64,000 nucleotides of DNA from Phallusia mammillata. Its lineage: Eukaryota. Under the pieces are notes generated by a model. The model saw only the letters and a list, made by a program, of their open reading frames with translations. It did not search any database and was not told where the DNA came from. The stretch spans positions 15,252,001 to 15,316,000 of the forward strand of contig OZ281501.1 of NCBI GenBank assembly GCA_965637545.1, written 5' to 3'. Positions 2,236-59,255 of this stretch are shown one piece after another (position 1 is the stretch's first letter; each line of letters starts with the position of its first letter). The translations under genes and the position numbers were made by a program.

Positions 2236-2476
2236 GACTAGACTATTTTAGCAATTTTTTTGGGTTGATCGAAAAAAGGAAAGGCTGTAGCCTTAGGGTT
2301 TTTTAAAAAATCGGATCAAAGTTTTCAAGTTTGAAAACCGGTCAACCGGTTTGGAGGTTCGGTAGGAGGCAGAAACCGGTCAAAACCGGTTTGAAACTGG
2401 AATATTCCCGCGAAACCCCACCGAAAACCGTATTTTTCTTCAATTCTTTGACCCCCAAAAATCGAAAAGGCTATAG

Positions 2477-24185: not shown

Positions 24186-24199
24186 TCTTTCCACAAATT

Positions 24200-26358: not shown

Positions 26359-29300
26359 TTAGGGATTGTCGATCATTGTGGATTCAATCCAACTTTGAAT
26401 TTTGGAAACCTCTGTGTAAAATCCAGGAAACACAAATCCATCCTCGTCAACGTGAGCGCATCGGAAACCAAAACTGACAATTCCAACTTGGATCCAACAC
26501 GATTCGCCGGTGTTCGGGTTCTTGTACTTTAAATTAAGGTTGTAATGTTGTTTGTTTGCCTAAACTGGAATCTTATCCTTATCTTTTAAGCAAAAATGCA
26601 AGTCGAGTCTGATACGGGCCTATGTTTCTCGGTCCAGATACGGCCTGAGTGTAAACATTGGCACTTAAATTGGCCTGTCTGCCAAGCTGTCGCTTTCGAT
26701 AACGCTGGATTTCATGACTAGTCGGGACTTCAAAATTATTCGGCTTTGGACCGTGCTTTGTGCTTTTACTTTAATGTTTGGATCCGAAAACTTGACAAGT
26801 TTACAATTCTTATCATACAGTTACGGCTTGCCCCGGCATGAAATACCTGACAAAGATTTTTTTCTATAAACAAAATAAATGAACACAAACTCACCATTTA
26901 ATTCGTAAAATAACACGCCGATACACAACTTTGTATTATGCTAACTACCCCATTGCACATATACCTGTCGCATAAGAGGTCCACCGCTATCTCCCTGGCA
27001 TGTGTCAGACACCGTATTCGACCCATCAGGACTTTTCACACATATCATCTGATTAGTGTACAATGCACGTATTCCTGATATTGCTTCGATCCTTTCAACC
27101 GCTTCATTGCATCTGGTGATACAATCATTCAAAAATATTAAAGCTTTACTTATCCCCGCTTAAAACACTGCCGCAACTAAACACTTTTACAATTTTTTTG
27201 ACTCACATGTGGTGATATGTAAATCTTTTTTATTAAATTCGTGAAGAACAAACGACACACACAAAACAAAAAGACAATTAAACTTCTGAGAGTATTTACA
27301 CTCGATTCCCTACTTTAATTAACGTTAAGAACTACCGGTTAAGTCAAATGATATACGTCACTTATACGTCACTTTCACAATGCTAAACCAATGGAAAACT
27401 ACCATTTAAGTCAAATGGTTTAGCATTTTGAAAGTTACGTATAACACAGCGCCAGGACCAAGTTTGACCATAAGGTCTGGTTAAAGGTTGAATAATAATA
27501 ACTGGCCAACAGAATTTTTGGTGCCCTCAATATTAAAACTGATGTTGACTAATTTTGGGGTACTGATTTCAAAAATCATTACGGTTTTCTGCAATCAGGT
27601 CACCTTTTTAAGTTATTTACAAAATTGAAATTTATGACCATATTGATTCAATGACTTTAAAATTACTCTTGTATGTGTTCGATAAATTTTTGTTACATTA
27701 TACACAACAATTTCCCATATTGTAGTTAATTTCATAGCATGAATATGTGTTCTATGTTTATGCTCTGTCTAAAAATGGTTGGTGCAGGCTAGTGGTAACT
27801 ATACACTATACGCGTTTTATGGAGTGATTTTCAGACTAGTAAAGCAAGGTGGTAAAACTAAAATTAGTAATGGCTAGGTCATATATGAGCTGTTGCATCA
27901 AAAACCAAGATGGCCTATGCTACATTACTAGTGAATATCCTTACAACACAACCAAAAAGAAAAAAAAATCTGTATCAAATGCATGTCTTGCACACTTAAA
28001 AGTGGATGTGAGGTTTAGGACAAGCAATGGGCTCCACTTACCTAGTGTTGATTGGAATATTGCAGTGATGGACAGAAACAGTAGAAAGAAACTAAAATTA
28101 CTAGAAAGAGTACATAACTAAGTTATTAGGCGGTCTGAAAAATTTGGTATAAAATTGAGTATAAAGCTGCACTTCCCTTACAACGTAGGGAATATAAATC
28201 ACGAGAATTAAGCTGAAAGGTTCCAATAGGATATCAGTGAAATGGAACGTATTAGGGATTAATAATGTGATCCTGGCTAATTACGGATGGTAAATTAAAC
28301 GGGACGATATTTGCTGCCTTTTCCGTTACAGAATTACATGTGTAGGCCTGTACCCGATATACCTGACAACTTACAAATTTGAAACTATGTTTCGTTTCTG
28401 TCTTGATTTTTGTTTGTTAAGAGTGTCCACCGATTTTTAAAAACATTTTAAATTAAATTCGAAATTTTGTTCTTGCAATAACGTTAATTCCGAATAAAAT
28501 ACTCAAAACCAGTTTCACTACATACGGATTGTTTTTTTTTTAAGCTTGGACGTACCATAACAGGAAAACTAGAAGTGATACAGATAAACCGATTGCATTT
28601 TTGACATCAGGGCAGTAGAATTAGTCAAATCAGTTAAAACATTACTGGGGCCTGTGAGTGATCAAGGCGAGTTCTCACAACGCTTCATCACATTACTGTT
28701 ATTAACTCAAACTTACGAGGCATCTGATTGAATTTGCTGGACTGCTTCCTTTAGACGGTACGGAATTGGGACTGTATCGTTTATTGACGAAGTCCATTTA
28801 CCAAATCCTGTAACAATGAAACGTGTTCTGCTTTCTTTAACGTAGCGATCGACAAGCCATCTTCCTGCATAGAGAAAGCGTTAAATGCTTACCTGCGTTG
28901 CAATAGCTGTACAACCAAACAAGTCCACTTTAAATTCTACTGAATTTGTTGCACATTTGGACGAAACCTGTTTTGCCAGAATCAGGCGGAAAATTCATAC
29001 TTGATTCAAATTTTTCAAAAACGTTTGAAAACATGATGATTCTATATGTGGACATTTGTAAAAAATTTCTATAGTTTGTTTGTTTTTCCCGCAAGGACGA
29101 AACCATATCTAACGACAAAGTCGGAATTTTACAAAGTGATTATTAACAAGTCCGGGTTAACGCGCATTTTTTGTTGCAAGCGTGTTTTGTATACCGTCAT
29201 TCCACTTGCCTTTCTTTTGACATTTGACATCCTCGGAGTCGCCATCTTCAATTATTTGGGTTTCTTCTTGGTCCACGTACTTGTCAATGGGGACACAAGT

Positions 29301-30630
29301 ATTGCTGCAGGGCAGACATATTGGTCTCACATAAGGTGAAAGAGGGATAGTTCCGTTAAACTCTGGTATTCTGGTCGACCAAACCCAATTTATTCCGCCT
29401 CTGATGGCACGAAGTGCCACACCGATTCGAATCTAAACATCGTTTGGTTCTTATTACAATATCAACATGTTTGTTTTATGTTATATCTCTTAAAAGCTTC
29501 ATATCATAGCAGTAATAAGTTTATAAACAGCAACTAACAAAGGTTTCCTTTTATTTTAGTTAAAATTAAGCTAAATAAAACAGGATGACGTTTTTTTCAC
29601 GCATTTGGTCAAATTTAATGTGACATTCGCTTCGTCGTCACAAATCGTAGATGTTTGTTTTATTTTCTGCAAAGCAAAAAATTGACCACACTCAAGATAA
29701 AATCGTACCAGTGCCACGTCATGATCAAAGTTGGTTCTTCTAGCGCCGCGATCTTCTCGATCAAAATCTTGATGAATAAAAATTCTTCGCGGTTGAAACA
29801 CTTTCATGGTCGTGTTAATGGGTTTTCTCGGCATTGGCCGCTCGAAAATACCTGACAAAAAATATCGCAGATCTACAGGCACCATGCGACAAAGAGACAA
29901 AACGATATTAACCAGACTGTTATTACCTACTGCCACAGCCAGTGTGCTTGTCAGCCGTTCGATGTCGGCGTAGTCGTCGAATATATGAGCGGCTGTAAGA
30001 ACCCATTGCTGATTGATGAGGCTCCCGCCAGCGAAAATTCTTTTAAAGCTCTGTGGTTGTAAAGAATTACTGCTCAAAACTGAACGAAAATCAAACAGAT
30101 TTAAATTGTATTGGTAGATGAATTACTAGTTAGACGCATATTTCTCAAAGCAAATTAAAAAAATGTATGATAGTATGCTGACTGTGGTTATTTATCGGCT
30201 TCTGACATTCGCATCACCCTGCATTACACCTAGTATTACGGCTTCTTTGTCAGTTGTTAAAAGGGTTCATGTTCTAAAAAATAATGAAACAGCAAATCGC
30301 AGGACAACATAAGCATTTTTATAAATGTAAATAACAACATAATGTGATGATAGTCCGCGCTCCAGGTACACGGTCATTATAAAGCGCCACGGAGAGAAAG
30401 ATGTATCAACCAAAAAGTTACTATACTTAGTTTTTAGAGCAAATGATTGTGACTTTTAACGCGGCCTTTGCTGTTGAAACTAACTTGGTAAACAGTTGGT
30501 CCATTGTTAGGCATTACTGCAGCTTGCCACGGCCAGGCTCTGGTTGCTTTATTCCCTCCGAGAAGGCGACCCAACGAAGCTTGACGAATAATACTGTCCG
30601 TCTCCCCTGCTTGGCCGCATTTCTTCAAAT
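26359..30630 (-). CDS. Gene B serine protease cassette (7 exons, intact, trypsin-like D189/G216/G226)
   Basis: LGR-LLGG; [19 protein letters not shown]; DHDVAL|IRI; [13 protein letters not shown]; [13 protein letters not shown]...FPGFYTEVS. Exon lengths identical to gene A. Confidence 0.96.
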
Positions 30631-33600
30631 CTAGAAGAAAAGCAGTATGTTCACATTGTGTACGTGACGTTTACACTTTAATTTTGTTAAAATTTGGGCG
30701 CATTTTTTATATGCATGGTATGTTCATTGCAGACTGTTTGTTTTAAGTGGAAAAGGATTAGGATGTAAAGCTGGTTATGCAATTTAATGAAAAAAAATTA
30801 TAACAGTGATCAACGAAATATTGAAAAAAAACACTTCTGGAACCGTTGGGACTCCTTTGTGCTTTATTTTACCAAATGTTTTCAGTTGGTTGATTTCATA
30901 AAATCGTGTTGACTTTGGATACTTACTTATGCACTTTGCTTCTGTTCCCGACCACTTTCTGTCGCTGCGACATGACCGAAAAGATTCACCCCTTAAACTA
31001 TAGCCCTGGTTGCAAACATATTGAGCTCGAGAATTGTATTTTCTTGTTCTTTCCCGGTAGGTAACTCTTCCATTGGGTATTCCTGATAGCGGTGGACATT
31101 CTGCATCTGTATAAATAACGCATATTGATATGCGTAATAAATATAGTGCATTGCTGAGCTCTACTTATGCAGTATAGCGCTATAATTGTACACTGGATTT
31201 TTCACTTGGGATCAAGAAAAGCTAAAGACACAATACATCAAGGAGTATCGTGATATATACTTGGATTAAAGCACGACATGCCACAAGCGTCATCACAACG
31301 GCATCTCTTTAGAGCGCCCCTACAATCTGCGTCCGATTGACAAGGTTTTCGGCATCTTCTGCCCTCTTCAACCAGGTCCATTAATCTTGGGCATCTTTGT
31401 AAATCAACTGCAAAATAAAATCAGTAAACTCGAATGCCCAGCATTTTAAGATGTGATTTTTGAAATTAAAGTTATTTTTTGGTCTTACAGTACTGTACTT
31501 TAATGTCGTTCAACTGCAATAAAGCAGAATTGGTTATGAGACGTAAAAGTTCAGACTTGTACAAAAAGAGAACTAACTTAGGCAGATATTACAGTACCGT
31601 AATGAAACGGGCATGTTTGATTTCAGATTTAACGGACACACCAATTTAAACTTTACGGCAACCAAGTTCTTCATCAAAATGCTTCCAAATGGTGTTTCGA
31701 ACCACAACAAATTTTTGCTTCACTAGCTTTTTGTGTGTCGTTAAACCGCATATCAAACCACGTCATAGAATTAAAGTTTTACTGGTGTAAAGCTATTGCG
31801 GGTTAACGCATTTTCAATCTTATCCGCTTGTCACCAAAACCACTCAAGGTGCATTCTTTTGCCAAATACTTTCTTGAGAACAGTTTTACAAATTCTAGCA
31901 GTTGCTGTGTTATAATCAGGATTTCAATCGATGGCCGTAAAAATAAGGACAACCAAAAACCAAACTTTCATACGAAACGAAACAAACGTTTTTGAGCAAA
32001 TTTTTGCATGTAAACCAGCGATGGGATACATCGTATGCTACATATTTTGCCAGAAATCTGTTCCAGAAACCCGTTTAAAGGAAATACTTCTAGGTTTACT
32101 TTTACTTGTAGCAGGGATTGATTGTCATTTCAGTACGGTTGTTCGTTGTAGTTGTTGAAAATGAGACAAAATAAGGAACCAGGTCAAAAACAAGGACAGT
32201 TCTTAGAAATATGGACGACAAACTTTTCTAAGGCACCGCCTTTTAAAATAAGGACAAATCTGACAAATAAGGACCGTATGGCAACCCTGCTTATAAACGT
32301 CCTTCACAGTCATTTTTTCTTTCATAAAAATTTACTGGGCCACAGAATTTTTGTGTAAGGAAAATGGGCCACGAAAGAAAAAAAGTTGAGAACCACTGCT
32401 CTAATAGAACACGATGAGATTGGACAACGTCACAATTGACATTGTCATTCGTTGCTCAGAGATTTATCGCTGATTGGCCAGACGGTTTTGAACTTTTCTT
32501 AGCTTCACTGAGCCCTACGTTTTTTAACTTTCTTAATTAACCGTATTAGCAATCACGTGACAACTGATCGAGAAAGTTTGTTGCCTCATTAATCAGCACA
32601 AAACGATATCACGCACGACTAAAACCCAAAAAACTGCTGTATTCTACTATACCAATCTTGGTTTGTCAAATTTAAAGCAAACACTGTTGCATGCAGTGGC
32701 GGCTCATGCGTAAAACTTTTAGAAAAGCCACATTTCTAGTTTTCTAGCCATTGTTTAGTGTAAAAAACAAGTAATACAAATCTTAATTAACAACTCCATT
32801 GTGACGTAATTTTTGTTACCCAATAATGTACACGAGTGTAAACAGCAGACGGTATTATTTGTGTATTTGGTTTACTTGCACAGCGACGGACCAAACTCAA
32901 TAACATACAGGAATAATGTGGCACAAAAGCACACGTAACACAAACTCGAAACGACGCGTTTGTAAATAATCGTATATGTAAAAAAAACAGTAATAAATTA
33001 GTCGAAAAAGGTCGAAGTATTTCAGAAGGACAACATTTAAGAAAACTGGTTATAACACTGACCACTAACTAACACACTTGCTATTTAGTTATTTATATGA
33101 TAATGTTTCATTTACCTTATAGTCACAGCCAGTGTTTTCAACATATTTTATAACACTTCACAGATTATTGCCACACAAAAAACTAGCCATAAAGCTTTGA
33201 TTTGTATCATAATTGACAAATTTTATGACCACATTACATTCATGTCAAAATTTGTTTATTTAAACATCTTTTCTTTGAATTTTTGTGTACAGACTATTAA
33301 TTGTCTTTCGGTCTCTTAACTCTTAGACTTGATTCTTTATTTGGTGGCAAACAGCTTATAATTCCTTTTTTTAGTGCAAAACACCTCCATGCTTGAAAAC
33401 ACTCTCACTTAAATTTAAACCATATTATTAAACCTTGTGCTTCCTTTTTACAACCAAACTGAATCATGAAGTTATAGTTTGAACAAAATAATTGATATCT
33501 TCTTCCTTGATTTCCAAATGAAAACTAAGAAACTGTTTTTTTTTTCTATTTAGTTCTGGCACTGCAAGTGCAAGTCTTTTGGAAATAATGGTGGTCCTTA

Positions 33601-36600
33601 AAAAAGTTTGCATCCTTTTCCCGGTTAAAACGAACCGTTGTGTCTTTGAAGGACTCATAAAAAATGCAAAATGGATTTTTAATCTTAGTAATTTCACTTG
33701 TCAAAACATCATGCACATGGTTTTCAAAGTAATCATAAATATCAAATCTACACAAACATTTTTTCAGTAACTAGCTTTTCTTTGTCAACAATAGGATGTG
33801 CTTCGTGGTCACTACTATCTTTCTGTAGAATGTTCATTCTTGAAACATTTCCAATGAAGCAATTTAGCAGCTACTGTTTGGTAAAAAAAACAGTACATGC
33901 CTATTATGTCAATACACATGATTGCACTTGTTTGCAAATACTGTCCACATGGTGTGTTAAGAAATCAAAACTTAAAATTGTCTTCACTCAGGTGTTTCAA
34001 AATTCATGTTGCTTCAGCAATTGTTTGTTCTGCATTTAATAATGTCTGAATTTTCGTGAGGCATTAAACTTCACAGTCACAAAACTTGTTTTCTTTGGTA
34101 GCATTCAGAACTAAAACTAAGTATTTCTTGTGGTTGTTTATTCCATCGTGACATGTTTGGAACAGCAGGTGTTTTATCCCATTTTTTTCTTAAAACTTTT
34201 TAATTTAGTTGTTTATTATAAAGGTTAATCGTGACTTTTCAAGGTGTTAGATGACCTTCTTTCAAGGCGTTAGATACACTTTTTAAATCAATGATAACTG
34301 CAAAAACTGAAGCTCACTTATAGTCAGCTTAAAAAGTCACGTTAACCTTTAAAGAAATAAACTGAAAGATGGCAAAATAACTATTTAACTGTACTCACTG
34401 TCGATATTATAAATATATTACACAGGTTTTGCTTTGGATCACAAATAAAGCGGAGCAGACAACACAACTACAAGTCGTCCCAGGAGGTGCTGCGCGCGCC
34501 ACAGCCCTATGTCGCGTATTACGCCCGACATGCAGCTTTTCCAAGTGCGCCTGCGCACAACTGCAAACGTCACGGAACGTCATGAAACTTATTTTTATTT
34601 TAATAAAATGCAATTTAATGGCATAAAAATTATCTGATCAAACATAAAAACTATATGTAAAGATCGTTTGCTATAACAATTTGGAATAGGCATGCCAAAT
34701 AAAAATATAGGGAGTGCTGCAGCTCCGCAGCCCCCTCGCACGAGCCGCCTCTGGTTGAATGGTAAAATTACAAAAAGTTACGCTTGTGCACCAACTGCAA
34801 ACACATCTGTAACAATTTTTAAAGAAAGCATAAACAACGGTCGGTTTGTTGGTGCTGATAATTGATATAATTAAATAATGTATTGGTTTAATTTCGTAAA
34901 CGACAAAGCTTTAGGCGATCTATCTGTCATATCTGGCGTTTATGTGTGTTCCTTATTTGGCTTCGATACGCATGGCCCATACCATGGCAGTGCACTGTAC
35001 AACACAGATTTATCTTTCACGTTGATTTGTGTCATACGAATATGGCAGAGGGTAGATGTCGTAAGGATATGGGGTGGACATTTCTTTCTTGGCCGGAAAA
35101 AAAACGCAAAAAAATTCTAATTGTACTCGTGCATAAATTCTAACATACCTGTACACCTTGGTATTTCTTTAATCCAATCACCACTCTCAGGGCAGCTTCG
35201 GGAGTTTATCCCGTTTAGCCTGAAGCCCTCATTGCACTCGATGGAAACCGTTGAACCAGTAGCGTAGGCATTTTGTTGTGGAACCAGACGACCATTGTCC
35301 ACTGTGAAACTTGGACACTGTATCACTGCGAAAACGTTTTATTTTTAAATAAAACACGGAATAATCTAATGTTTCTGTAATTCTGCATACACATCGCCAG
35401 AGTGAAGTTTCGTCAAAGAGTTTATTGAAAGTGAACTAATAAAATTGTTTTTAAAATCGCAACTAAGCAGTATGTGGTATGTAGAAGAAAATTGCGTCCG
35501 CCCTTTAAATTGTTGCACCTTATATGCATCAGTAATTTTTATTTAATGCATGAGTTAAATAATTTATGCATCAGTGATTTGCTATGTTTACCAAGCTGTT
35601 GCAGCTTAGACCTTGACCTAGTCTTAGTTTTCAGTAGTTGATATGGTTGGCTACTGTACAATTTAACTTTCAAACTGTTTTATGTACATGTATATGCTTA
35701 TATTTAATAATTATGTACGTTGATTTTACTTCAATACAAATCAACTGAATTTGTAGTAATTCTTTTCTTATCATTGAAATCTCCTTTCAAGTAAAACGAC
35801 CGCGACGATTCAGGGTCATTAAAATCAGACAAAGAAAATTTAGTGTGAAAAACCACTAAATCTGTCGCTATGTATTATTTGTTTTATCAAAAAAATGCAT
35901 TTCGCTATAAATCAGTGTCTAAAAACAAAATAAAAAGCGGGATAAAAGCAAAAAAATACAAAAAACGCACACACCCAGACCAACCACAAAAAGCCTATCC
36001 TCTGTCTTACAGGACTGCAAATGCAGACCGGGAGGTATGGCGCTGATTAAAACCACGAAAAAAGGCGAGGAAAAGATAAGGGCGCAAAACGAAAAAACAA
36101 ACGATTGTAGCAACAAAGCAACGAGTCAACGAACCGCAGGAAGGACCATAGCTTGAACATTTATTGTGGCGCCCGTTAAAATTAGCCATTTGTTTTCACA
36201 AACGTCCAAATTTTCAGTCCGAGGTTCCTCTACAAAAACCACATAATAGCATTGTGCAATACCTAACTTTTTTTGGAAAAGTCGGAAATGTTTATTGTGG
36301 TAGTGCTGAAGAAGGGCCGAGCGGTCACCCCCTACACTTATGTCGGACGTCCGCCAAACAGCTCGATGTGAAATCCATCGGGTCTAAAAAAAACTTATTT
36401 GTAGTTTGGCCGACATATTGTTCTTCACACGCCAAACACGTGGCAACACATATTCCGTAGTTACGACACGAAAGTTGCTGACGTAAGTGGAACAGTCTTT
36501 GTTGTGACCGCAAGTCAGTCACCGGAAAAACCATTGATTTGGATTTGCCGTGGTGACCGCACAGGGCGCATTTGCCACAAGGATAAGATTCTGTTTTATG

Positions 36601-39600
36601 ATGTGCTAAACAAAAAAAATAAAAAAAATAAAAAATGTGCTGTTTCGTGCGCTAATATTTTGTTTTGATANNNNNNNNNNNNNNNNNNNNNNNNNNNNNN
36701 NNNNNNNNNNNNNNNNNNNNNNNNNNNNNNNNNNNNNNNNNNNNNNNNNNNNNNNNNNNNNNNNNNNNNNNNNNNNNNNNNNNNNNNNNNNNNNNNNNNN
36801 NNNNNNNNNNNNNNNNNNNNNNNNNNNNNNNNNNNNNNNNNNNNNNNNNNNNNNNNNNNNNNNNNNNNNNAAATAAAAAAAATAAAAAATGTGCTGTTTC
36901 GTGCGCTAATATTTTGTTTTGATAAAACAAATAAAACATAGCGACAGATTTAGTGGTTTTTCACACTGAATTTTCTTCATCTGATTTTAATGACCCTGAA
37001 CCGTCGCGGTCGTTTTACTTGAAAGGAGATTTCAATAATAAAATATTAGCGCACGAAACAGCACATCATAAAACAGGATCTTATCCTTGTGGCAAATGCG
37101 CCCTGTGCGGTCACCACGGCAAATCCAAATCAATGGTTTTTCCGGTGACTGACTTGCGGTCACAACAAAGACTGTTCCACTTACGTCAGCAACTTTCGTG
37201 TCGTAACTACGGAATATGTGTTGCCACGTGTTTGGCGTGTGAAGAACAATATGTCGGCCAAACTAAAAATAAGTTTTCGACCCGATGGATTTCACATCGA
37301 GCTGTTTGGCGGACGTCCGACATAAGTGTAGAGGGTGACCGCGCGGCCCTTCTTCAGCACTACCACAATAAACATTTCCGACTTTTCCAAAAAAAGTTAG
37401 GTATTGCACAATGCTATAATGTGGTTTTTGTAGAGGAGCCTCGGACTGAAAATTTGGACGTTTGTGAAAACAAATGGCTAATTTTAACGGGCGCCACAAT
37501 AAATGTTCAAGCTATGGTCCTTCCTGCGGTTCGTTGACTCGTTGCTTTGTTGCTACAATCGTTTGTTTTTTCGTTTTGCGCCCTTATCTTTTCCTCGCCT
37601 TTTTTCGTGGTTTTATCAGCGCCATACCTCCCGGTCTGCATTTGCAGTCCTGTAAGACAAAGGATAGGCTTTTTGTGGTTGGTCAGGGTGTGTGCGTTTT
37701 TTGTATTTTTTGCTTTTGTCCCGCTTTTTATTTTGTTTTTAGACACTAATGATGCCTTTTATAGCGAAATGCATTTGTTTTGATAAAACAAATAAAACAT
37801 AGCGACAGATTTAGTGGTTTTCCACACTGAATTTTCTTCAACTGAATTTGTTTATAATTGTAGAAGTTTCTATGATCCAAAACGAATACAGTTTAACACT
37901 GATATTGTGGATTTGATTTGAAGAAAACCGGAACGCTTTATTATTACGTTACAGACAATAAATCGATTATTTTTCGGCATGCCAAGTAAGTATATAACCA
38001 ACTAAAAACATATCTAATCTGAACTGATCACATATTCACACAAGGTAATTCGAGACTTGACATGATCAAAACATATTACCCCGACAACTTGGTTGGGTTT
38101 CAGACCAACTTTCGGAATCCTGACAAAGAAGCGGTAATGTGTTGGTCAATCTGTAGCCGGATGAACATGTGAACGAAACAACTGTGCCCACTGGGTGGCG
38201 CAACCCCTCTTGAAATATAGGATTCATTTGTCCGTTGGTGATTCTTCTCAGTCGTGGGCAAGTTTTTTCTGCAAAAAACGTGTAAACACTTTAAATGATC
38301 TGATAGGCAAGTTTTTATTGTCTCTCACGGACAACATATCCTGTGTATTAACTGCCTTACTGACACAGGAGACGGTATTTGGGTTAGCATCCCATCGTTT
38401 CGTTATTTGACAGGCATATATGACTGAAGTTTGATATCGTTTGCTGTTAAGCTTGTAACCATCTCGGCATGTGTAACTGACTCTTGTCCCAGGAAGGTGA
38501 TAACCATAACTTCCACGAGGATATGTGATCCTAACCTCGCCATTGTCAATCAAACGCGGAAAATCGGAACACTTTAGGTCTGCAAAGACGGTTTACGTAA
38601 TTTGTTTGTGTATCATAAACATAATGTGTGTCTATTCAAAGGAGTCTAAGTTGTTTACACGTAGCGAAGACGAAAAACGTTATTTTTTTTACCAAATTCT
38701 AAACTTTTTTAAAGTTTTTGTACCTGCAGAACAAGTGGGTCCGGTAAAGTCTTGGCGGCAAAAGCACACAAAGCTGTCAACTTCATCACGACAGATCCCA
38801 CCGTGTAAACACGGCCTCACTTGACACTCGTTACCTATAACACACTCGTTGCATAAAATGTACGGATGTCCACTGTGAAATGGATAAAAAAAATTCAAAA
38901 TCTAACAGAACAGCCTGCGAGAGTGGTTAATACAGCCTGAATTTATAATTATTACGAGGTAAGTCAAATACCATCTCTTAACATAGGTCAAATGTATTTT
39001 GCCAGCATAAATCGGCTTTTTACGTAGGCCTACTAAATCTTCATGGGGTTTGTGCAACAAAGACTGAATTGATGTGACAAAACTAATCCCGAAACAAATA
39101 AAATAAAAACAAGGATAATAAAATGTCGAAACGTTTAGAATAATCACTCATGTCGCTTGTATTCGAGTAGTACAAAATCAGCGCAGTAGTGAGTAACTCA
39201 CGACAGCACTGCTGATTATCAACTGTGCACAATTTTTGACATTGGTGATTTGACCGTAAGCGAGTGATTTGTTTCCTTAGTGCTTATTCCATTACTGGTT
39301 GTTAGTGTTTTTTTCGATGCTGTCCCTATTGATTCAATGTCGTTATCTAAGGTTAGTAAATAGGCTGCAAGGAGCCTGCAGCCTAATTTACTTACTGCAC
39401 GATTCATTTAGCACAGTTATGTCATCAAGATGCACAGTGCCAGAAGTTGCAACAAATGAGACAGTTACTTCCGTATCACTTTGTGGCACGTTCAGTTCTC
39501 CAGATTGCCATCCAGCTCGTCGAGTTCGATACTCTCTTCTGCAACACACAAAAATAACGTGTGGAATTTGGTTGATGAACCAGCACTTGAACATAACTCT

Positions 39601-48600: not shown

Positions 48601-51600
48601 TCAGCGACGTCTAGCCGCTGGTTAAAAAGCCCGCAGTTTTTGTTGGAGTCTGAGAATCACTGGCCCTTTTGTATTATCAGACGTACCAGCTGAGTTCAGT
48701 CCTGTAAAAAAGGCCAAAAGTCTCCATGCAATTGGTTGTATGGAAGCAGTCGATTGTTGAGAAGATCATCCATCGGCACTCTTCGTTGCATCATTTGGAA
48801 AAAAAGTATCGCCTGGCTGCTTGGATACGAGAAACTTTTACTGTCGCGTGTTCGGCGTGACAAATCTGTGGTGGAGTACCGTGGAATATTATCGGTTAAA
48901 GGATTAAATGCTGCCAAACTGGAGTTGATCAAATATGTGCAGCGAAACTTCATATGTTCAAACGGAATCCAATTGTTATCGATCGCATGCTTCGGTTTGG
49001 TGGTCGATAAGAAAAGGCTGTCAGTCCGTACGATACCAAAAATCCGATTCTGCTACCTCATTCATGCCGTTTCACTGACTTGGTTATCAAGAGACATCAT
49101 CGTATTGTCGGACATTCTAGGATGGGCGACACTTGGAAATCTTCGCGCCAAAGGTTTTGTATACAAGATAGAGTAACCGTACGCTGAGTGATTGGAAATA
49201 GTCTGTTCTGCAAAAGACTAAATGCTCATGCTGGAGTACAGAGGATGGCAAACCTTCTCTCAGCGAGATATCACCCAGATAAGCCCCCGTTTTCAGACGT
49301 AGGGATGGATTTTTACAATCCCTTTCCAGTTAAGCAGATGGGACGGAGCGTCGTGAAACGGTTTGGAGCAGTGTTTACCTGCCTATCAAACCCAGCTGTC
49401 TATATCGAAGTCGCCCACAGCTTCTCTGCAGACTCGTTTACCGACGCGTTTTGTCGCTTTATTGTGCGGCGTGGAAATCCTGTAAATATTTATACCGATA
49501 CTGGAACGACTTTTGTTGGTGCAGAACGAATTTTAATAGAATCGCTGAGGTCTGTGCAAATGGTGCTTTCCATTCAGACAATTTGGACATCATTGGTGAC
49601 ACAGCAAGTTGTTTACTACGAAACATTGTCTACGACTTTGTTGGGGTTGAGTCAATCCTCGACTTGCGTTTACTTGTTCCAGTCACTTTTGATGCCAGAG
49701 ATGATGAGCCGAGAACATCCAATCATCTCTTGCTCATGAGATGCCACTTAAATTTGCCTCCTGGCTTGTTCGACAAAAAGGACTGTTACGTGCGGCGCCG
49801 TTGAGCGCAAGTGCAGTACTTGGCGAAAATTTTTTAGACCCGCTTTGTTTGTGAATATCTTCCGAACATCATTTCCAGGCAGAATTGGTACCAGAAGTTG
49901 AGAGATTTCCATATCAACGATGTAGTTCTCATTGTAGATGTTCGCAGCCACGTCCCAAGTGGTTGGTGGGTTGCGTTGGGGACATTTCCCGATAAAGACG
50001 CGATATAATCGTTTCAAATGACCGATTGCAAAACTTTACTTGATTGTTGCCGCTGAAAGCAAAGCTTAGTGTGGTGCGCTGTTTTGTTCATTGAATTTCG
50101 TTCAACGTTGGATGTTTGTTTGTGTGTGAAACGTACTTACCCGGGTAGGTAGATTCCTTTGTTTTGCAATTTTAGTGATGAATAAGGCTAAATTGATGTT
50201 TGTGACAAGTAACTTATCATTCTTCAAGTAAACGTTGTTTGTGACTGTCGGCGAGTGTTTATATTTTGACTTGTTTCCTAAATTAATTAATGTTTTACGT
50301 GTGGCTCATGACATGCTGTATTTTCATATAGTGCTCGCAGCGACTGTTTCATCGTCTTGCAACTGTTGCTAATTGTGCAGTACCTGTTGACCTGCGTCTG
50401 AAAATAGTTGGTGAGTTGGTCATAACGGCATTTTTTGTGCTTTGACAAATGTCAATGTGTTTCGTTTTTCTTGTTTAGAAATCCGTTTTTATTCCTTTTT
50501 CTGTTCTTTCTTGATCGTGTACGACGTTGTGGTTGTTGGTGTTGTAGCTGTGGATTATTACATGGGATTCGGATGCGTGATTTGTGTGCTACCAACCCCG
50601 AGGCTAAGCCTTGCAGATCGGCCGTTCAAAGTCTACAGCAACAATTAAACTTCTAATTTTCAATTTAAAAGCGTTGTGACTTTGAACTAATCGTGGAAAG
50701 AAATTGTTCAGTTACACCACATGTGGCAAAACAATCCGTATTTTATTTAATACTAAAAACTGCTACATTTTGAGTATGTTTAATGGATTGCCTGCAAGCG
50801 TACGTAGTTTTGTGCCATTTTGTTTCGTAATGTTAAGACAAACAAAAATGACTCTGTGATTAAACGGATTTTGAAGCTTTTTTTTACCACGGTTATAAGC
50901 TTGTTCGTCAGCAAACATGTGTGGTATATTTATCTACAGCTAATCTAAATATATTTGTTTTTTATACAGAATTTGTTCAGCCGTGGCCAACTTTTAGAGC
51001 CTATATCATTGCTATCCAAACTTTATCAATGGGGACAATTTTTATCAGGTGACGCCCTCGGGCCGGCGATCTAAAGTTCTTTTAGCGAAGTTTCTTTTTA
51101 CCGTAGAACAAGAACACAAATGTATAGGAATTTACGGAAATTTTGGGATTTTATTGTGTCAGCAACATGTATGATTCCTTTTTACGGGTTAATAAAGTTT
51201 TATAGAAACTTTTGCGTAACAAGTCGTCACAACAAAAAAAATTAATCCAAACTCTGGCAGGCCATAGGCAATACAGTTTGAAACAACAGCCGCGGGCCAC
51301 GTGAAATGCACCCACGGGCCGCATTTTTGGACACCTTTGGCTTAAACGTTTGTGCGTAACAACTATTGTCTTGAGTTCGAAATCGGGAGGAAATTTTGGT
51401 GGATTGTCGTACACCTTATCAACCATTAGGCAGGACTACGTTAGCAAACGGTAGTTAAGTGTACTTCAAAAGTTGTATTATAATCTCGTAGCATACATAA
51501 ATTACTTAAGTAATTTTTTGTTCACCGATGCAATTCGCCGTTCCTTGCCATGTAGCGTTTTCGTTGCAAACCGCTGAATTGCTTCCAATGTTCTCATAAC

Positions 51601-52548
51601 CTTGGTTGCAATTAAACTCAACACGAGATCTGTAGATGAAATCCATTCCTTGGTGGTTGACGGAACCATGATCTGGTGCCACTGGTTCATTGCATCGCAA
51701 AACTTACACGTAAAAAAAAACATTTGTTAGGAAAAGTGGGGCAAAAAGTGACTGCACGAAAACTTCGGAACTAAGCTTAAAAATAAAACTACCCGGAAAC
51801 AGAAGGAAAGCTTCACTGTTCCTAAACTTGATTTAATATGTAAACGTTTAATATGTACAATTTTTGGGTAAAACACGTACATTTAATTTTGGGGATGGTG
51901 AGTTTAAACCAAAAATAATAACCCAGAAAAAGCAGGTAAATTTAATTTATACCCAAACAATATTGGGTAATTTAATAGGGTAGAACTGTATTCAACCCAA
52001 CCAGTTTTGGCTTAAAACTACCCAAAAACTATTTTGGTGTCCCCCCCCCCCCCCCCCCCCCAAGATACCAAACTTTTTTGGTTTTTTTTACCCAAATTTG
52101 TTTACAGTGTACAGCAACAGTAAGAGCTTCACGGGGTCTTAGGCTAACCGGCATTTAGTTAATACTGCGAGTTTAGTGAGCACAACAGGTGCTAACAGAG
52201 AGGTCTATACGGTCTACTGCCAGACAGCGCATTTGCAGCCTCAAGGTAGCACAATATATTTCAAATTATTGTTGTCCCCCCCCTCACCCCCCAAAAAAAC
52301 GATCCTAGATACGCCAATGACCCAGCCCACATTGATGTCCATTATTCTAAAGACAAATTTCAACATACCTATGCATCTTGGCTGACCGTTAACCCAAGGA
52401 CCATCCTCTGAGCAGGTTTGAGAACTCGTCCCATTTAGTAGATAACCAGCATTGCACTCGATGTTAACAGTTGAGCCAATGGCGTAGACACTTCGTTGTG
52501 GAACTAGGCGACCGTTCTCAACTACAAAACCCGGACACTTGATTTCAC
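26359..52548 (-). CDS. Gene B: mosaic factor B-lineage protease without vWA (CCPx5-MAM-EGF-CCPx3-WAP-CCP-serine protease); no own signal exon found
   Basis: CCP 52548-52369, 51702-51526, 43755-43579, 41855-41679, 41150-40974; MAM 40160-40050, 39832-39682, 39538-39396; EGF 38834-38724; CCP 38579-38361, 38268-38080, 35325-35149; WAP 31407-31261; CCP 31106-30927; protease 30630-30485, 30050-29927, 29851-29709, 29432-29210, 28864-28717, 27112-26965, 26526-26359. All exons are open and modules are phase 1-1. Their joining into one transcript is inferred. Confidence 0.7.
27501..28655. mobile_element. Unclassified insertion in a gene B intron
   Basis: Absent from the paralogous gene A intron (ggttgaataat|tgatcaagg at ~9275-9290). 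Weak inverted ends ACTGGCCA / ACAGGCCC. Confidence 0.55.
32694..34753 (-). mobile_element. Decayed ZMYM1-type hAT element
   Basis: TIR CAGTGGCGGCTC / GAGCCGCCTCTG. TSD GTTGCATG / GTTGAATG. Relic [19 protein letters not shown] resembles the hAT dimerization domain. Confidence 0.7.
36671..36870. other. Assembly gap (200 N)
   Basis: Run of N. The ~50 bp before the gap is repeated right after it, which suggests a contig overlap. Confidence 1.
37741..37780 (+). ncRNA. Degenerate type I minimal hammerhead ribozyme in the PLE pseudo-LTR
   Basis: AGACA-CTAATGA-T-GC..GC-GAAA-TGCA-TT-TGTTT. The inverted copy reads CTGAT at the same place but is deleted in stem II. Confidence 0.5.
39396..40160 (-). 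CDS. MAM domain (3 exons) of gene B
   Basis: [13 protein letters not shown]...W; GYIAV...LTSPP...CFKFFY; W...[22 protein letters not shown]. Phases 1-1, 1-2, 2-1. Confidence 0.88.
42385..42900. mobile_element. Terminal fragment of the same hAT family as 32694-34753, opposite orientation
   Basis: CAGGGGCGGCTCGTGCGAG end. 42630-42900 is the reverse complement of ~34300-34600. Confidence 0.75.
43304..43360 (-). ncRNA. Type I hammerhead ribozyme motif (PLE-derived)
   Basis: Minus strand CTGATGA-A-GACGAC[CTGTATAGGAC]GTCGTC-GAAA-CG-TC: intact core, 6-bp stem II, palindromic ACGT helix III. Stem I is imperfect. Confidence 0.75.
44530..46100 (-). mobile_element. Decayed Penelope-like retroelement (RT plus GIY-YIG)
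   Basis: [29 protein letters not shown] (RT); [25 protein letters not shown] (GIY-YIG). Multiple frameshifts. 3' end has a mutated hammerhead (44564-44618) and AATAAA. Confidence 0.92.
46143..46187 (+). ncRNA. Type I hammerhead ribozyme motif from a second PLE family
   Basis: CTGATGA-T-GACAG-CAGAGA-CTGTC-GAAA-CG-TC. Perfect core and stem II; stem I only ~2 bp. Confidence 0.65.
46395..50637 (+). mobile_element. Decayed BEL/Pao LTR retrotransposon (gag, RNase H and integrase relics; RT deleted)
   Basis: gag-like LQLIAKLP; Pao RNase [24 protein letters not shown]; integrase [27 protein letters not shown]. Probable 3' LTR 50080-50637; only the tail of a 5' LTR remains (~46395-46437). Confidence 0.88.
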
Positions 52549-53138
52549 CTGCATGAAAGACGTATATACAATCTTAAATGTTATGCGGCCAATCGTTTGA
52601 CGAAACGTATGGTTTTTGAAAGGTAAAACTGCGGTAAAGTTGTAATTCGATTTAAAGACTCTGATTTTATATTGAATTAACGTCCATCGCAAAAAGTCAA
52701 TAGAACATTTTTATAACTCTTTGCAATTAACAAATAAATATTTTCGATGTTACAAAAATAATTCAGTGCATCATATCAGTTAAATATGTAATGCAGAAAA
52801 ATCAAAATATACTTTTAGTGTTCCGAGTAGAAAAATATTTAACACTTTTCGGACAACTGTTCAAAAAGTTTTACTTTACAGAATCAATTTAAACCCAACA
52901 AAATTGGACATACGAGTTTGCTAGCAAGTGAAGCTGAGAGCTAAATGAGAAAGGCGTTTTAAGAGCTCTATCGTTTTAGGCAAAAAAATGAAACATTTTG
53001 TAATATAACTTATCACGTTGAAAGATTCTAGTTGTTAAACTGTATTGAAACGCTTGCTTTGGAATTATGAGGCATCAGTTAAAATCATGATTTCTTTGTC
53101 AAACTAGTTACTAGAAAAACTGATTTCATAGTTTAGAA

Positions 53139-56100
53139 TTATGGATAATTGCAATAGTCGTATTTACCAATGGTTATATCAATCCAACTCTGAACTTTGG
53201 AAACATCGGTATAAAATCCTGGATAGCGGAAACCTGTAGTTCTGTCTACTTTACCACATCCGTATCCAAAACTGACGATTCCAACTTGAATCCAACACGA
53301 ATCTGAAGTGTTTGGGATTTCGTACTGCCAATAGAATTTTTTTAACATTGTTTCCAAAGTCTACTCAGAAAGATTGTTGCATGGCAGATTTGACCACGGC
53401 ACATTAGGCCTACTAGATTAAGATAGGTTATGCTACCAAACAATTAATTATTTAAACAACTAGGTATTATTTTTTTAATTAACTTTTTACTTATTGTACA
53501 CAATTCATTGTTTTCTCCTTGTTTACTAAATTACAGACACCTCTGCAACATATAAAATTCAACAACAGATATGCAACATTTGAGATTTAAAAACAGCTCT
53601 GCGACATTTTTTTCCCTATCTTTTCCCGCCAGCTCAGACAATTAAAATATTCAAAAAAGCTTTATTTTTATAAATCCTAGCTTTATAACTACGATTTAGG
53701 CAAATAGCCAAAACATTCTAAATTCAAACTTTACTTCAAGTGAGGCAGGTTATTGCGCTGTGTCAGAATTGGTATTAAGTTATTAAGTATTGTACAAAAT
53801 ATCGTTGTACCACTGTTAAACTGATAGCGTTTTTTTTTTATAGATTTCAGCGTGATGTCTGCATTTTCTTTTGCTAACATACCTTTCGCATCAAAGGTCC
53901 ACCGCTGCTACCCGAACAAACATCCGATACTTTACTCGTTTCAGGTCGAGCACAAATCATACGGTCCGTATACCTTACATCCAGTAAAGTTTCATCTGCT
54001 ATTTTGTTGACAGCAATTTTACATCTGAAGATGAAAAAGACTATTCTAGATTAAGACTAAACACTACTCTATATGAAGAGTCAGATCGAATAGCATTTTG
54101 CCTTACATTGTGTCAGGTTGAATTTGTTCAGTTGTTTGTTGAAGTTCGAATGGCATTACTCTGCGTGTCAAATCCGTATAATAGAAACCTGTGACGAACA
54201 TCGGTGCTCGATCTTTAGTGTAATGATTCGCAAGCCACTTTCCTAAAAGCAAAATAGTCTTGTACCGCGTTGTTGGGTTATTTTTATCCTAATTGTCTCG
54301 CATCGAATTTTATTAGCTTCACAGTTCAATAGTATTCAACTGCAATAAGACATTAATCAGTATTTCACTTTAATGCATGTTTCGTTGAAAGTCACATCAA
54401 ATCTTTCCATGTAGCCCGGACATCATTTATAAGAAGTATAGTTAATCACACAATAGTTTAGCCAATATGATGCTTGACTGGAAGTTACCTTTCTTGAAAC
54501 ATTTTACACCTTCGGAGTCATTCTCGTTTATTAGTCTGCTTCCATTTTGGAACAAGTAGTTTTCTATCGAAATACATGAGTTACTGCAGGGAAGACATAT
54601 AGGGTTCACATAGGTTGAGAGTGGAATTGTCCCATTAAACTCAGGTGCACTGTCGGTCCAAATCCACTCTCCATTTTCTTTGATGGTACGAAGCTCTATG
54701 CCCACGCGAATCTGAAAAAATGATAACAGCCATATTGTAGAATGATACTTCTCTTTTTCTTTTGTGCCTAGAAAGGGGAAATGCCTTGTTAACTCACACG
54801 GCTGGAATCCCCCTGCAAATATTTTTTGAAGGTCACTGCATCGATTCGAAACTAACACTGATTTTGATTTGCAAAATGATGTTGGCCTAGGTCCAATAGT
54901 ACCCTGCTCGATTTGAGATAATTTGTGGTCGTTTAATACTTCACAAACTTTTAATCTTACCAGTGCAACATCGTAATCATAATTGCTTCTGCCATGTCGA
55001 TCAGATCGATCGAATCTGTCATGTACAACAATATTTCTCGGTTGAAACACAATAACATTCGAGTCGATTTTACTTCTTGTATTGTCAGGTCTTCTGAAAA
55101 TCCCTTTCAAAATAGATGAGAAGTTTGTTGTTTCATGTAACATAGGATGCAAATCCCTGGCATTTTTTTATCTTTTATTACCTACGGCCACTACGAAGCG
55201 TTTTGTCCAATTCTCAATGTTGGAGTAACGATCAAATATATGTGCTGCTGTAAGAACCCAATGTTGATTAATCAGACTTCCACCAGCAAAACTACTCGCG
55301 AAGCTCTAAACAATCACAAAAAGTCGACCAAGTTAGCCATCAAGACCGAGGAATAAAAGTAAAATCGTTTTCTGTCAAGCTGTTTGTTTAAGATTTTGTT
55401 TTGGGGTCTAATAAAACTGTACCGTTGCTTACGTTATATACTTTTCCATTGTTAACCATAATTAAAGCTTGCCATGGCCAAGACCTGTCTGCATCAATTC
55501 CTTCGACAACTCGACCAACGGATCGGGGAGGTGAAGTGCTTATGCGGTTTACAGTTTGTCCACACTTCAGTTTTATACCTACATAAAAATATTAGACTGT
55601 CAAAACAAATTTGCTTAATGCCGTTTCATAAAACCGTGAATAATGCGCATGCGTTGAGAAGGCAATCTGCAACTTTCGCAAACTGAATTGGAATATTTTA
55701 ACTTTTGTCATTCGGTTATTTCAAAAAAATTCGTTAAACTTATACTCAGAAAATTTATAAGATTTTATTTGCTGTTTGATGTTAGGATTTTTAGTGGAAT
55801 ATAAAGGCTTGCTTACAGTAAACCAGCTTTATATGGTTGAAAAACTTAAATCTATAACAATAGCATACTTCTTGCTCTAAAGTAAATTCGCTCACCTGTG
55901 CAATTCGCCATTCCTTCCCAAGTAGCGTTTTCATTGCAAACTGCCCAAGTGCTTCCAATGTTCTCATAACCTATGTCACAGGCAAACTCAATCCGAGACC
56001 TGTAGGTGAAATCAATTCCCTCGGATACGACAAAACCATAATCAGGTGCTACAGGTTCACTGCATCGTAAAACTGTCACAAACATATAAATATCGAAGTT

Positions 56101-57395
56101 TATCGCTGCAAACCAAGTGGTTTTGAACGGAAAAAATGAAACATATGAATTTACCAAGTCAAGACGATTTAAAGAAATCTGAAGCGACGAAAGAACTCAC
56201 TTAAACACCGTGCTGCTGTCCCCGACCATTTCTTGTCACTACGACATGAACGGACAGCGTTTCCCCTTAACACCCAGCCTGGATGGCAACGATATTCAGC
56301 CTGAGATCTGTATCTTGTGTTTCGTGAACGATAAATGACTCTTCCAAACAAAATTACTGGTAATCTGGCACACTCCGCATCTGTTGACGCAAAACGCGAT
56401 AATAAGCTCAGCAGAAAACATCAGTAAAGACATTGTTTGTTTTTTTCATGTTGTGGACAAACTCTTTGATCATATTCATAAACAAGATTTTTGAAGGTCA
56501 TTAAATTGATATCAGTGAACAAATACTTTACGATTTCAACTGTGGCGTTTATAAATACCGTTGTGGAGTTTTTGCAGGCTAAATGGGCAATAAATGTTGA
56601 CGTATCTCACGACTAAATAAATTCAAGGTAAAAAATATATTTAACAATCAAATAATAAGGGCAAGAACAATGCATAAAATTAGAAACCATTCACAACAGC
56701 AATTTAATTTTGTGCGATAAACTTAACTTTGTGCAATTATATTAACCAACCTATGACAAAATTAGAATCAAAACCTTTCACATACCTTTTACTCAAACAT
56801 ATTTCACAATCATTTTTTGCGTAACTTAATTTCGTGAAACGAAGGTGTCTCAAAACCGACACAAAAGTAAAAATCCCGACTTCTTCTGCTCGTGTTTACA
56901 GATATTACCTGGCAATCTATGTTTTAATTCCATTACCATGAACTTACTTGGGTTGAAACACGACATGCCACAAACATCGTCACATCGGCACCGCTTCAGG
57001 CGCCCTCTGCAATCTGAATCGCTTGAACACGGTTTCCGACAAAATCTGCCAAACTCGATGCGACTCAGATCTCTGCTGGAGCAAATTGTTGGTGAAGAAC
57101 CTGCAAAAAATATTCAACTAGTACTAACAATCCTAAAAGCATTTAATTCGTGTTTGCCTGTAAAAGATACAACAATAAAAGGAAATACTGTACATCATCC
57201 TAAAATAAGTTGGAAACGATGGGTCAAAATTTATCTTTGAATTAAACACGACGCTACATCAATACAGTAAATGTAACCGTCGCGTTACAAATTTGATTGC
57301 AAATAAATAGTAACTGATACTTCTTACTTACCAGGTCGTACAATTGAAACTGAACGACAGAATAGTGACAAAAAGAATATACACAAGGTTTTCAT
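53139..57395 (-). CDS. Gene C: complete secreted WAP-CCP-CCP-serine protease (factor B-lineage, no vWA; D194S)
   Basis: Signal 57395-57332 MKTLCIFFLSLFCRSVSIVRP; WAP 57100-56948; CCP 56380-56201, 56072-55896; protease 55578-55433, 55305-55182, 55103-54961, 54711-54489, 54242-54107, 54024-53883, 53324-53139. All GT-AG, in frame, no stops. Confidence 0.93.
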
Positions 57396-57744
57396 CCCAA
57401 TCCTCTAGTTTTCCTGCAAAATACACATCAGTATTAATACTAATTAAATTGATGCAATTTTTGCCAGGGCTGCAATTAAACATTAAATTACAAAAAAATA
57501 CTTTTTGACATTATAGCAACAAATGTAACTGCGATTGATAAATCGGCTGCGACAGTTATGTTTTATTCTAAACTAATCAAGCTCAAGTACCTCCTAGTGT
57601 TTTCAAGCACTATTCCTTCTGCAAGCGAGTTACAACTGTGACAAACATTGCAAGGTGCCAAAAACGAGCAGCTACATACAAAGTGCAGGACAGGAAGTTG
57701 TTATAACTATTTGCGAACCGCTGAAAGTTCACGTTTCATTCGAC

Positions 57745-59255
57745 AAATTTTCGATACAATTACTTTAAACTTAAGGCTACTTTAATTGTTTCCGATTTCT
57801 GGAAAACAGAGTCATGCGCGCAGTATGGATTGTATATGATGCTGCTGTGGCGTTTAAAGTACAAAACCGACAAAGCCAATCAAACCTTTGATTTAGTTTA
57901 CAGGGATAAACAATGTACCACTTAAAAGTGGATTTATCAGAGTGATATAATACACATGTACGAGTGTATGGTGCAGGGGTGGCCAACCGGTCAAAGCCTA
58001 AGATCCACATTTTTACTGTTTTTCCACAAACAGCCACATTTCTCTCCCATTTTAAAGGCTAACTTGACAAAAAAATTACTCAAAAGTTCTTCCCTGCTGA
58101 GAAACTTTGCGGTATTTTCATCTAAAGCACATGCGCCCCAAACTTAAAAATGCCAAGTGGCGAAACTAAATTCATTTCGACGTCACTAATGCATTTACCA
58201 CCAACAATCGCTCAATTCAAACCCAAGAGAAACTGCCCATAAAATATAACGTTCGTCATAACCCAAAAAACACTGATTGAAGCATTATTATTTTGGAACA
58301 CATTTGTTGTAAATATTGCTGTTGCTTTGTGTCTCATTTGAATTGTACGCAACAATTGGCAACCAGTCATTGTTCAACAATTGAATATATGCCATCATAA
58401 TCAAGCCATTATTGCCACATAAGGTTCCAGTTTAAAGGCACGATTTGTGGCCATACGGATAATAAGTTTGTTCAAAAGCAAAATTGTTAAAGCTTTATTT
58501 TATATTTCACGATTTTTGTGCCAGATCGCCACATACTAACCAAAATATACACAGTGGCCCTAAACTTCGACAACGACGTAAGAGCCGCATAAAACAAGAC
58601 GAAGAGCCGCATGCGGATCGCGAGCCACGGGTTGGCCACCCCTGGTATAGTGTATACAGCAACACAACAGTACAACTTTTGTACACTGACTGCATATTAT
58701 GTAAAAACAATATTAGCAATTTGCTTACCGACAAAAATCTTCTTGCAGCCTTTTACAAATCAGCTCATTTTTTCTTTTCCACATGATTTCATCAAAATAT
58801 GTGTCTCAGTTATAAAAAGCATCTTTACTACACAACGTAAACAGTTTTGCCACATGAATCGCGATTGTTTTCATTTTTTGCTTTCCAAACTGCAACAGAA
58901 AGTTTTCCGCAAAGTTTTTGATCCAACTGTTTGGTATTAAAATACTGACAAAGTTCCATTTGGTGCGCGGATCTTGCACGATAATAAAAATCAACGTAGT
59001 TTGCCGATAGCATAAAGCGCCTGTCGGGCACAAAATCAAGATGCTTTAACTATGCAGGTGCTGTGTCGTTATGCAGCCTCTTTTTCAATTGCTTTTTTAT
59101 GAAGTGTGTTAAACTCGATTGGCGTTTGTTTCATCATCCAAAAAAATACTAAATTTTTCATAAGGTTTTGTTGCCTAATGCATTTGCGCTTGCTGTGCGG
59201 TACATTTTTAAAGTCGACCAAACAAGGAGAATATGGAATCATGGTTTGTTCATAG
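57745..59255 (+). repeat. Repeat family F copy with a nested MITE
   Basis: Colinear with 24200-25040 apart from the 57974-58644 insertion. Ends where the hAT at 59256 begins. Confidence 0.8.
57974..58644. mobile_element. hAT MITE
   Basis: TIR CAGGGGTGGCCAACC / GGTTGGCCACCCCTG. TSD GTATGGTG / GTATAGTG. Absent from the 24.4-kb copy. Confidence 0.9.

Follow-up and report, generated by a model that had tools for sequence, protein, structure and literature searches.

The DNA analysed here is a window of 64,000 nucleotides (nt) from the ascidian Phallusia mammillata (contig OZ281501.1); position 1 is its first letter, and all genes discussed lie on the minus strand. The window carries a tandem cluster of factor-B-related protease genes, namely gene D, gene C, an array of CCP, MAM-like and EGF exons, unit B and gene A. 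On balance, gene C and the array appear to form one serial unit, in which CCP and other array exons are spliced behind protease C and which possibly runs on into protease B. Retention of protease C with array exons behind it was observed in a copy of the gene whose exons are 5-10% diverged from those of the window, and the same arrangement is expected for the window's own copy. That a transcript also runs from the CCP exon K2 through the CCP exon A10 into unit B is a step that we infer.

Gene C and the end of its protease

The first exon of gene C (57395-57332) holds the ATG and a signal peptide, MKTLCIFFLSLFCRSVSIVRP, with 91% identity to the N-terminus of the Phallusia protein CAB3226759.1 described below, and it ends in phase 1. 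It is followed by a WAP exon (57100-56948, recognised by Pfam as WAP) and by two CCP exons of the exon model, CCP1 (56380-56201) and CCP2 (56072-55896), all three of which are phase 1-1. Protease C is encoded by seven exons, comprising exons 5-10 (55578-55433, 55305-55182, 55103-54961, 54711-54489, 54242-54107 and 54024-53883) and a last exon at 53324-53139, whose TAA lies at 53141-53139. From signal to TAA, this model gives an open frame of 557 amino acids. Because the intron between CCP2 and the protease (55895-55579) is just 317 nt long, gene C has no vWA domain; the vWA part of the Phallusia protein P0002 matches gene A alone (16693-14713). The protease is of the Bf/C2 type: its closest relatives are P0002, a Phallusia 'C3/C5 convertase', and other Bf-like proteins, and the protease domains have a PICLPC insert in common with ascidian Bf-like proteins. 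The catalytic residues His57, Asp102 and Ser195 are present, and residue 194 is a serine (GSSGGP, D194S). This atypical residue had been pointed out in an initial annotation of the locus and was borne out, its codon being covered by an exact contig of DNA run X1. The same run holds both exact and variant forms, with 5-9 overlapping contigs per place, and this mixture could stem from haplotypes that are deeply split, from more than one paralogue or from pooling of the sample.

An open frame of gene C was searched against a library of 1.8 billion proteins, and seven matches were returned. The best match was CAB3226759.1 (A0A6F9D7U8, P0001), a Phallusia mammillata protein of 745 amino acids named 'CiBf-3 complement factor B-3 precursor' in the database, a name which hides both the absence of vWA and the CCPs behind the protease. 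In tblastn, the protein was colinear with all eleven exons of C, its match ended at 53169 and resumed at 52543, and it then followed three CCPs (52543-52370, 38580-38356 and 38272-38069). These CCPs are the array exons A1 (52548-52369, phase 1-1, Pfam Sushi), K1 (38579-38361) and K2 (38268-38080, or to 38066 by read-through), the latter two being recognised by Pfam as well: residues 548-605 correspond to A1 with 86% identity, and residues 606-745 to K1 and K2. CAB3226759.1 ends at the read-through stop of the window's K2 (SCRGNML* in the protein, SCRGNMF* in the window). A window model made of C, A1, K1 and K2 is open over 748 amino acids and shares 81.6% identity with CAB3226759.1, with 3 gap positions. 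Exon order and junctions are the same in both (signal-WAP-CCP-CCP-protease-CCP-CCP-CCP), but CAB3226759.1 has the motif GDSGGP where C of the window has GSSGGP.

The place where the protein leaves the protease was found to be a phase-1 GT donor inside the last exon of C (TTG|gtaaat; exon end 53168, GT at 53167-53166), which had been overlooked in the initial annotation. This donor sits eight codons ahead of the stop of C, and reading through it adds GKYDYCNYP and then the TAA, so that the exon can act as a splice-or-stop switch. Donor 53168 and acceptor 52548 are both intact and in phase. The interval between the stop and A1 (53138-52549) would be part of an intron in the long form, together with 53139-53167, and 3' untranslated region in the short form. 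It had been stated that the first array exon lies about 590 bp past the stop of C, and that the CCP donors of C and the acceptor of this exon are phase 1. Both statements agree with our exon models, in which the interval measures 590 nt, a tcatgcag acceptor stands before 52548, and the exon ends 56201 and 55896 are in phase with it. Run X4 shows no depth over 52650-53049.

The region 51450-57420 was compared with contigs from four runs, three of them RNA-like and one DNA. GT-AG joins were found at five introns of C in contigs of run X4, and partly of run X5 (57100/57332, 56380/56948, 54242/54489, 54024/54107 and 53324/53883). One X4 contig covers A1, and its loose end at 52369 reads, after reverse-complementing, ACCCGAAGTGTCCA, which translates as D-P-K-C-P, the residues with which the next CCP of CAB3226759.1 opens; the K1 exon of the window starts ACCTAAAGTGTTCC. 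The RNA contigs, from runs filed under the same species label, are 90-95% identical to the exons of the window, and when their variant letters were put into these exons, all changed codons (17/17) gave the residues of CAB3226759.1. The RNA contigs therefore represent the CAB3226759.1-type copy and corroborate that protein, which means that the RNA bearing on the C-terminal CCP tail comes from the diverged copy. It is distinct from the copy of the window, being either a paralogue or an allele that has diverged deeply. Long runs of G in the intron behind A1 (52040-52075 and about 52280, minus strand) draw in short contigs from every RNA run; this coverage is an artefact of low complexity and does not reflect expression.

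The initial annotation had explained the locus by mutually exclusive cassettes as in MASP1/3, with the signal-WAP-CCP(-CCP) leader joined in one form to protease C and in the other, skipping C, to 52548 and through to protease B. The observations behind it were reproduced. Between the stop of C and 52549 neither a signal exon nor a canonical AATAAA was found, and no signal exon was found just upstream of the WAP exon of B, all as had been reported. The scan for signal exons (ATG, hydrophobic stretch and phase-1 GT donor), which recovers the real exon 1 of C, gave nothing credible in 53138-52549, 38068-35339 or 35139-31408; a match at 31674-31578 was rejected, as it lies within a repeat and is not signal-like. 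AATAAA and ATTAAA are both absent from 53138-52549, and the first ATTAAA comes 1165 nt past the stop of C, with variant hexamers only before it. Little weight can be given to the missing hexamer: 26% of random windows of 590 nt on the same strand also lack both forms, and an intronic interval would account for its absence. Compatible phases, open skipping models (1270 and 1329 amino acids), the missing poly(A) signal and the leaderless state of the array and B all agree with alternative cassettes, and skipping isoforms could coexist with serial ones. However, every observed transcript keeps protease C, A1 is reached from the last exon of C in CAB3226759.1, and the units of Styela and Clavelina stand in series. 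The joins 56201->52548 and 55896->52548, which had been proposed as a check of the cassette model, are not among the 15 joins listed, of 20, for the diverged-copy RNA contigs. Splicing of the leader past protease C finds no support in CAB3226759.1 or in the RNA contigs of the diverged copy, and mutually exclusive cassettes are very improbable at this locus. With the array most likely joined behind protease C and not in its place, the claim of an independently arisen cassette switching of the MASP1/3 type is withdrawn here.

The array and unit B

Several exons of the array are passed over by CAB3226759.1. Between A1 and K1 these are the CCP exons A2 (51702-51526), A3 (43755-43579), A4 (41855-41679) and A5 (41150-40974), all recognised by Pfam as Sushi, a MAM-like domain in three exons (40160-40050, 39832-39682 and 39538-39396) and an EGF exon recognised by Pfam (38834-38724). 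Beyond K2 there is a further phase 1-1 CCP exon, A10 (35325-35149), which is a copy of A3-A5. The Pfam match of the MAM-like domain is partial, with an E-value of 1.2e-3 and 19 bits against a gathering score of 26.4. A2 had been described as a near copy of the second CCP of C, and the relationship holds, with 78.5% identity over 200 nt including about 20 nt of flank; the copy is a diverged one, with a synonymous divergence (dS) of 0.64 and a ratio of nonsynonymous to synonymous divergence (dN/dS) of 0.28. A3, A4, A5 and A10 were tandemly duplicated together with their flanking introns, about 430 nt of the A3-A5 upstream intron being carried by A10, and dN/dS among these copies is 0.32-0.69. 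All array exons are intact and have consensus splice sites, and their boundaries are phase 1 except for two inside the MAM-like domain.

A second splice-or-stop switch was recognised at K2. Its donor is GGG|gtaata, and read-through gives GNMF and a TGA at 38068-38066, four codons on. An AATAAA is located at about 37942, 123 nt beyond this stop, and the two elements together fit the 3' end of CAB3226759.1.

Unit B consists of nine exons: a WAP exon with a phase-1 acceptor (31407-31261), a CCP exon (31106-30927) and seven protease exons (30630-30485, 30050-29927, 29851-29709, 29432-29210 with a GC donor, 28864-28717, 27112-26965 and 26526-26359). They encode an intact WAP-CCP-protease of 475 amino acids with the full catalytic triad and the activation site GR|LLGG, and the intron between CCP and protease (30926-30631) is about 300 nt long and holds no vWA. 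Exon lengths and splice sites of unit B are those of gene A, the GC donor included, and the proteases share about 80% DNA identity (dN/dS 0.42 at dS 0.29). No stop or frameshift occurs in 1427 nt of B, whereas the introns differ from those of A by many indels. The low dN/dS and the undisrupted frame indicate that B has been kept as coding sequence.

As regards its position, A10 lies 3.7 kb upstream of the WAP exon of B, with an array-type intron in front, and the segment 31563-31763, which is 156-356 nt upstream of this WAP exon, shares homology with the intron that comes after A4/A5. Together with the lack of a visible signal exon, this array-type flank places B in the context of the array, without a visible promoter-side exon. 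In alignment, the 170 nt upstream of B showed no homology to intron 1 of C or to the intron before the WAP exon of A. Two side observations concern unit B. The GC-AG intron (AAG|gcaagt) is present in A (10633-10632) and in B (29209-29208), both on the minus strand, and gene C has GT at this place; use of the GC-AG junction is confirmed by the Phallusia protein P0002 (KKG|RWL). About 2.2 kb past the stop of B there is a relic of a K1/K2-type CCP pair (24214-23935, minus strand), in which a repeat cuts the K1 part short at 24180 and the K2 part ends …SSCRGNMF, which suggests that the ancestor of B also had a CCP tail. The repeat that cuts it is also found upstream of gene C (24181-25062 resembles 57731-59257).

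The array exons skipped by CAB3226759.1 may be optional or unused. If unused, only C, A1, K1 and K2 would be working, and A2-A5, the MAM-like, EGF and A10 exons and B would be untranscribed leftovers of duplication in a rapidly rearranging cluster. It can be said for this explanation that no RNA was seen for the middle exons, that the K1/K2 relic shows leftovers to exist here, and that C of the window itself carries D194S. It is nevertheless improbable, as open frames, all cysteines and consensus splice sites have been kept despite 10-25% DNA divergence, dN/dS is below 1 in every pair tested (0.28-0.69), and the coding sequence of B is free of disruptions although its introns differ from those of A by many indels.

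Between K2 and A10, a repeat-rich stretch in which no exon was recognised (35768-37849) holds an assembly gap at 36671-36870. The gap is edged by identical direct repeats of 54 nt (36617-36670 and 36871-36924) and is enclosed by a pair of inverted repeats with 99% identity (36048-36607 and 37060-37615), and its edges look like overlapping contig ends in a young foldback or paired repeat. Since the exons closest to the gap are each complete and 1.2-1.3 kb off, no known reading frame crosses it. No Pfam domain was found in the larger open reading frames of 31421-38066.

Other ascidians and the extent of the gene

Clavelina lepadiformis has a full factor B protease whose last exon closes with a phase-1 donor (GAAG|gtaata). 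A WAP exon follows 60 nt after this donor, and then CCPs and a second protease; the 60-nt intron is itself open, with no stop. Such a spacing leaves no room for a separate start, so the link to the second protease is forced. The Styela clava locus (17964-24452 and 31858-38591 of its stretch) contains two tandem leader-protease-CCP copies and a leaderless array. The last exon of the first protease has a phase-1 donor (ACAG|gtatta) with a stop five codons on, and three CCPs come after it. The last CCP of the second tandem copy likewise carries a donor that precedes a stop by four codons; about 460 nt beyond this CCP lies the phase-1 WAP exon of a WAP-CCP-vWA-protease unit. A nested CCP-MAM-CCP-lectin 'gene' in Styela begins at an internal Met of a CCP and is leaderless; the MAM and EGF exons of the window show only marginal similarity to this nested array, which does not support orthology. 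Predicted proteins with two proteases are XP_077969388.1 (Styela clava) and LOC143468357 (Clavelina, P0133), in which a protease is followed by CCPs and/or by a leaderless WAP-CCP-(vWA)-protease. Both have the same phase-1 donor at the protease C-terminus. By motif scan, vWA belongs to the downstream unit in XP_077969388.1 and to the upstream unit only in LOC143468357. These computer-predicted models are about 30-35% identical to the window. Judged from genomic sequence, the serial layout appears to be the same in three ascidian orders (Phlebobranchia, Stolidobranchia and Aplousobranchia).

A division into two genes was weighed against this background. Gene C would then own the array as far as the K2 stop at 38066, and B, perhaps with A10, would be a separate gene with an unseen first exon, which would be in the gap, very short or atypical, or within the repeat-rich 38066-31408. 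The end of CAB3226759.1 at the K2 read-through stop and the AATAAA after it would be expected from such a division, and the gap and young repeats between K2 and A10 are compatible with it. Moreover, the Styela proteins P0005 and P0006 begin signal-CCP-WAP-CCP-protease, which would fit a signal exon joined to A10 and B, and the ascidian transcript P0018 is a WAP-CCP-protease with its own signal. On the other hand, no exon with ATG, hydrophobic stretch and phase-1 donor was found in the readable 6.5 kb, array-type intron sequence lies both before A10 and before the WAP exon of B, and the homologous WAP-led units of Clavelina and Styela have no room for a promoter or leader. Two separate genes are thus considered somewhat unlikely.

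In the preferred serial unit, 57395 to at least 38066 would be one gene, and its product would be a secreted factor-B-lineage protease without vWA, built of signal, WAP, CCP, CCP and protease C. When donor 53168 is left unused, the stop eight codons on would be reached and the short form of 557 amino acids produced. When it is used, CCPs would be placed behind the protease, with A1, K1 and K2 giving the 748-amino-acid form, and inclusion of the optional A2-A5, MAM-like and EGF exons would extend this to up to 1156 amino acids. At K2 the second switch would operate: read-through would lead to the stop at 38068-38066 and the AATAAA 123 nt on, and use of the donor would lead through A10 into WAP-CCP-protease B, making a chain of 1686 amino acids with two proteases in series. 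An Arg activation site would be present for each of the two proteases, and B would stay attached to all modules before it. The view taken at first that C, the array and B are one gene thus stands for C and the array, on the colinearity of CAB3226759.1 and the lack of a leader in the array; the link to B we infer. A fuller version of the serial unit is put forward tentatively, at somewhat less than even chances. It has a single promoter, a 31-kb unit and two switches, yields three nested secreted products (protease C alone, C with the CCP/MAM/EGF recognition tail, and the two-protease chain ending in B), and takes the serial layout to be ancestral to ascidians.

Several points weigh against the serial unit. 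No RNA contig at least 95% identical to the window's own copy was found, and the join 53168->52548, which rests on CAB3226759.1, is absent among the RNA joins listed. CAB3226759.1 may derive from a cDNA or be a gene model, the ANISEED paper giving no decision between the two. This protein, moreover, skips A2-A5 and the MAM-like and EGF exons and stops after K2. No transcript was seen with A2-A5, MAM-like, EGF or A10 exons or with a link into B; no Phallusia protein in which a B-type protease follows an array turned up in the protein library searches, and a word search found no short transcript fragment with the WAP exon of B. A first exon of B could be concealed in the gap or the repeats that separate K2 from A10. 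Compatibility of frames is uninformative, as the serial model (1686 amino acids) and both skipping models are all open. Lastly, the RefSeq model XP_077969388.1 (P0006) mixes exons of the two tandem Styela copies and is not clean evidence; it was not treated as proof, and the genomic layout was used instead.

Vertebrate MASP1 yields MASP-1, MASP-3 and MAp44 by attaching mutually exclusive protease cassettes to a shared CUB-EGF-CUB-CCP-CCP heavy chain. The Phallusia locus resembles MASP1 in that several products would come from one locus through alternative 3' ends and in that a protease block lies upstream of further coding exons. It differs in that protease C, the upstream one, stays in the product and gains modules behind it, CUB is absent, the protease is of the factor B lineage, and the leader is signal-WAP-CCP-CCP. 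In polyserase-1, a type II membrane protein, the protease domains are adjacent. Polyserases (TMPRSS9/polyserase-1, ovochymases) share with the predicted chain several S1 domains in series, each with its own activation site, and TMPRSS9-like proteins were frequent as weaker matches in the protein searches; in contrast, the product of the window would be secreted and have a long CCP/MAM/EGF/WAP spacer, its serial form being a prediction. The ascidian factor B proteins (CiBf, P0002, gene A) have the closest proteases, with the PICLPC insert and with WAP and CCP modules, and the CAB3226759.1-type C protease shows 51-53% identity to them. Unlike these, C and B lack vWA and have an activation site of the classical Arg-(I/V/L)(I/V/L)-G-G type immediately following their CCPs; C has further CCPs behind its protease.

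Accounts of ascidian complement usually list a few factor B and MASP genes. In the literature, no description was found of an architecture in which a CCP tail is spliced onto a protease. The locus reveals a branch of the factor B protease lineage that lacks vWA; its enzyme would carry recognition-type modules (CCP, MAM-like and EGF) after the catalytic domain, and the chain may include a second protease. If this is true, recognition and proteolysis are coupled in a different way in the sister group of vertebrates, and the leaderless or fused gene predictions at such loci are explained.

Neighbouring genes and repeats

Domains recognised by Pfam in the window were Sushi (in ten exons), EGF, WAP and Trypsin, and a motif scan of the window found no FBG, C-type lectin or CUB motifs. 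Gene D is represented by its last exon only (63458-63213). Between genes D and C there is a hAT-family transposon (61979-59512), with Pfam support for 61163-59512 (DUF4371 and the hAT dimerisation domain). Penelope-like elements were initially suspected in the repeats at 44.7-46.3 kb and 36.3 kb, an assignment that had no Pfam support and was dropped. Gene A encodes LDLa-WAP-CCP-WAP-CCP-CCP-vWA-protease and has its own signal exon. At about 8850 its protease has GDSGVP in place of GDSGGP beside the catalytic serine, and unit B has the normal motif. At about 2300-5900, also on the minus strand, there is a tandem array of one repeat whose frames repeatedly read FRWGFAGIFQFQTGFDRFLPPTEPPNRF, apparently a satellite or tandem element.

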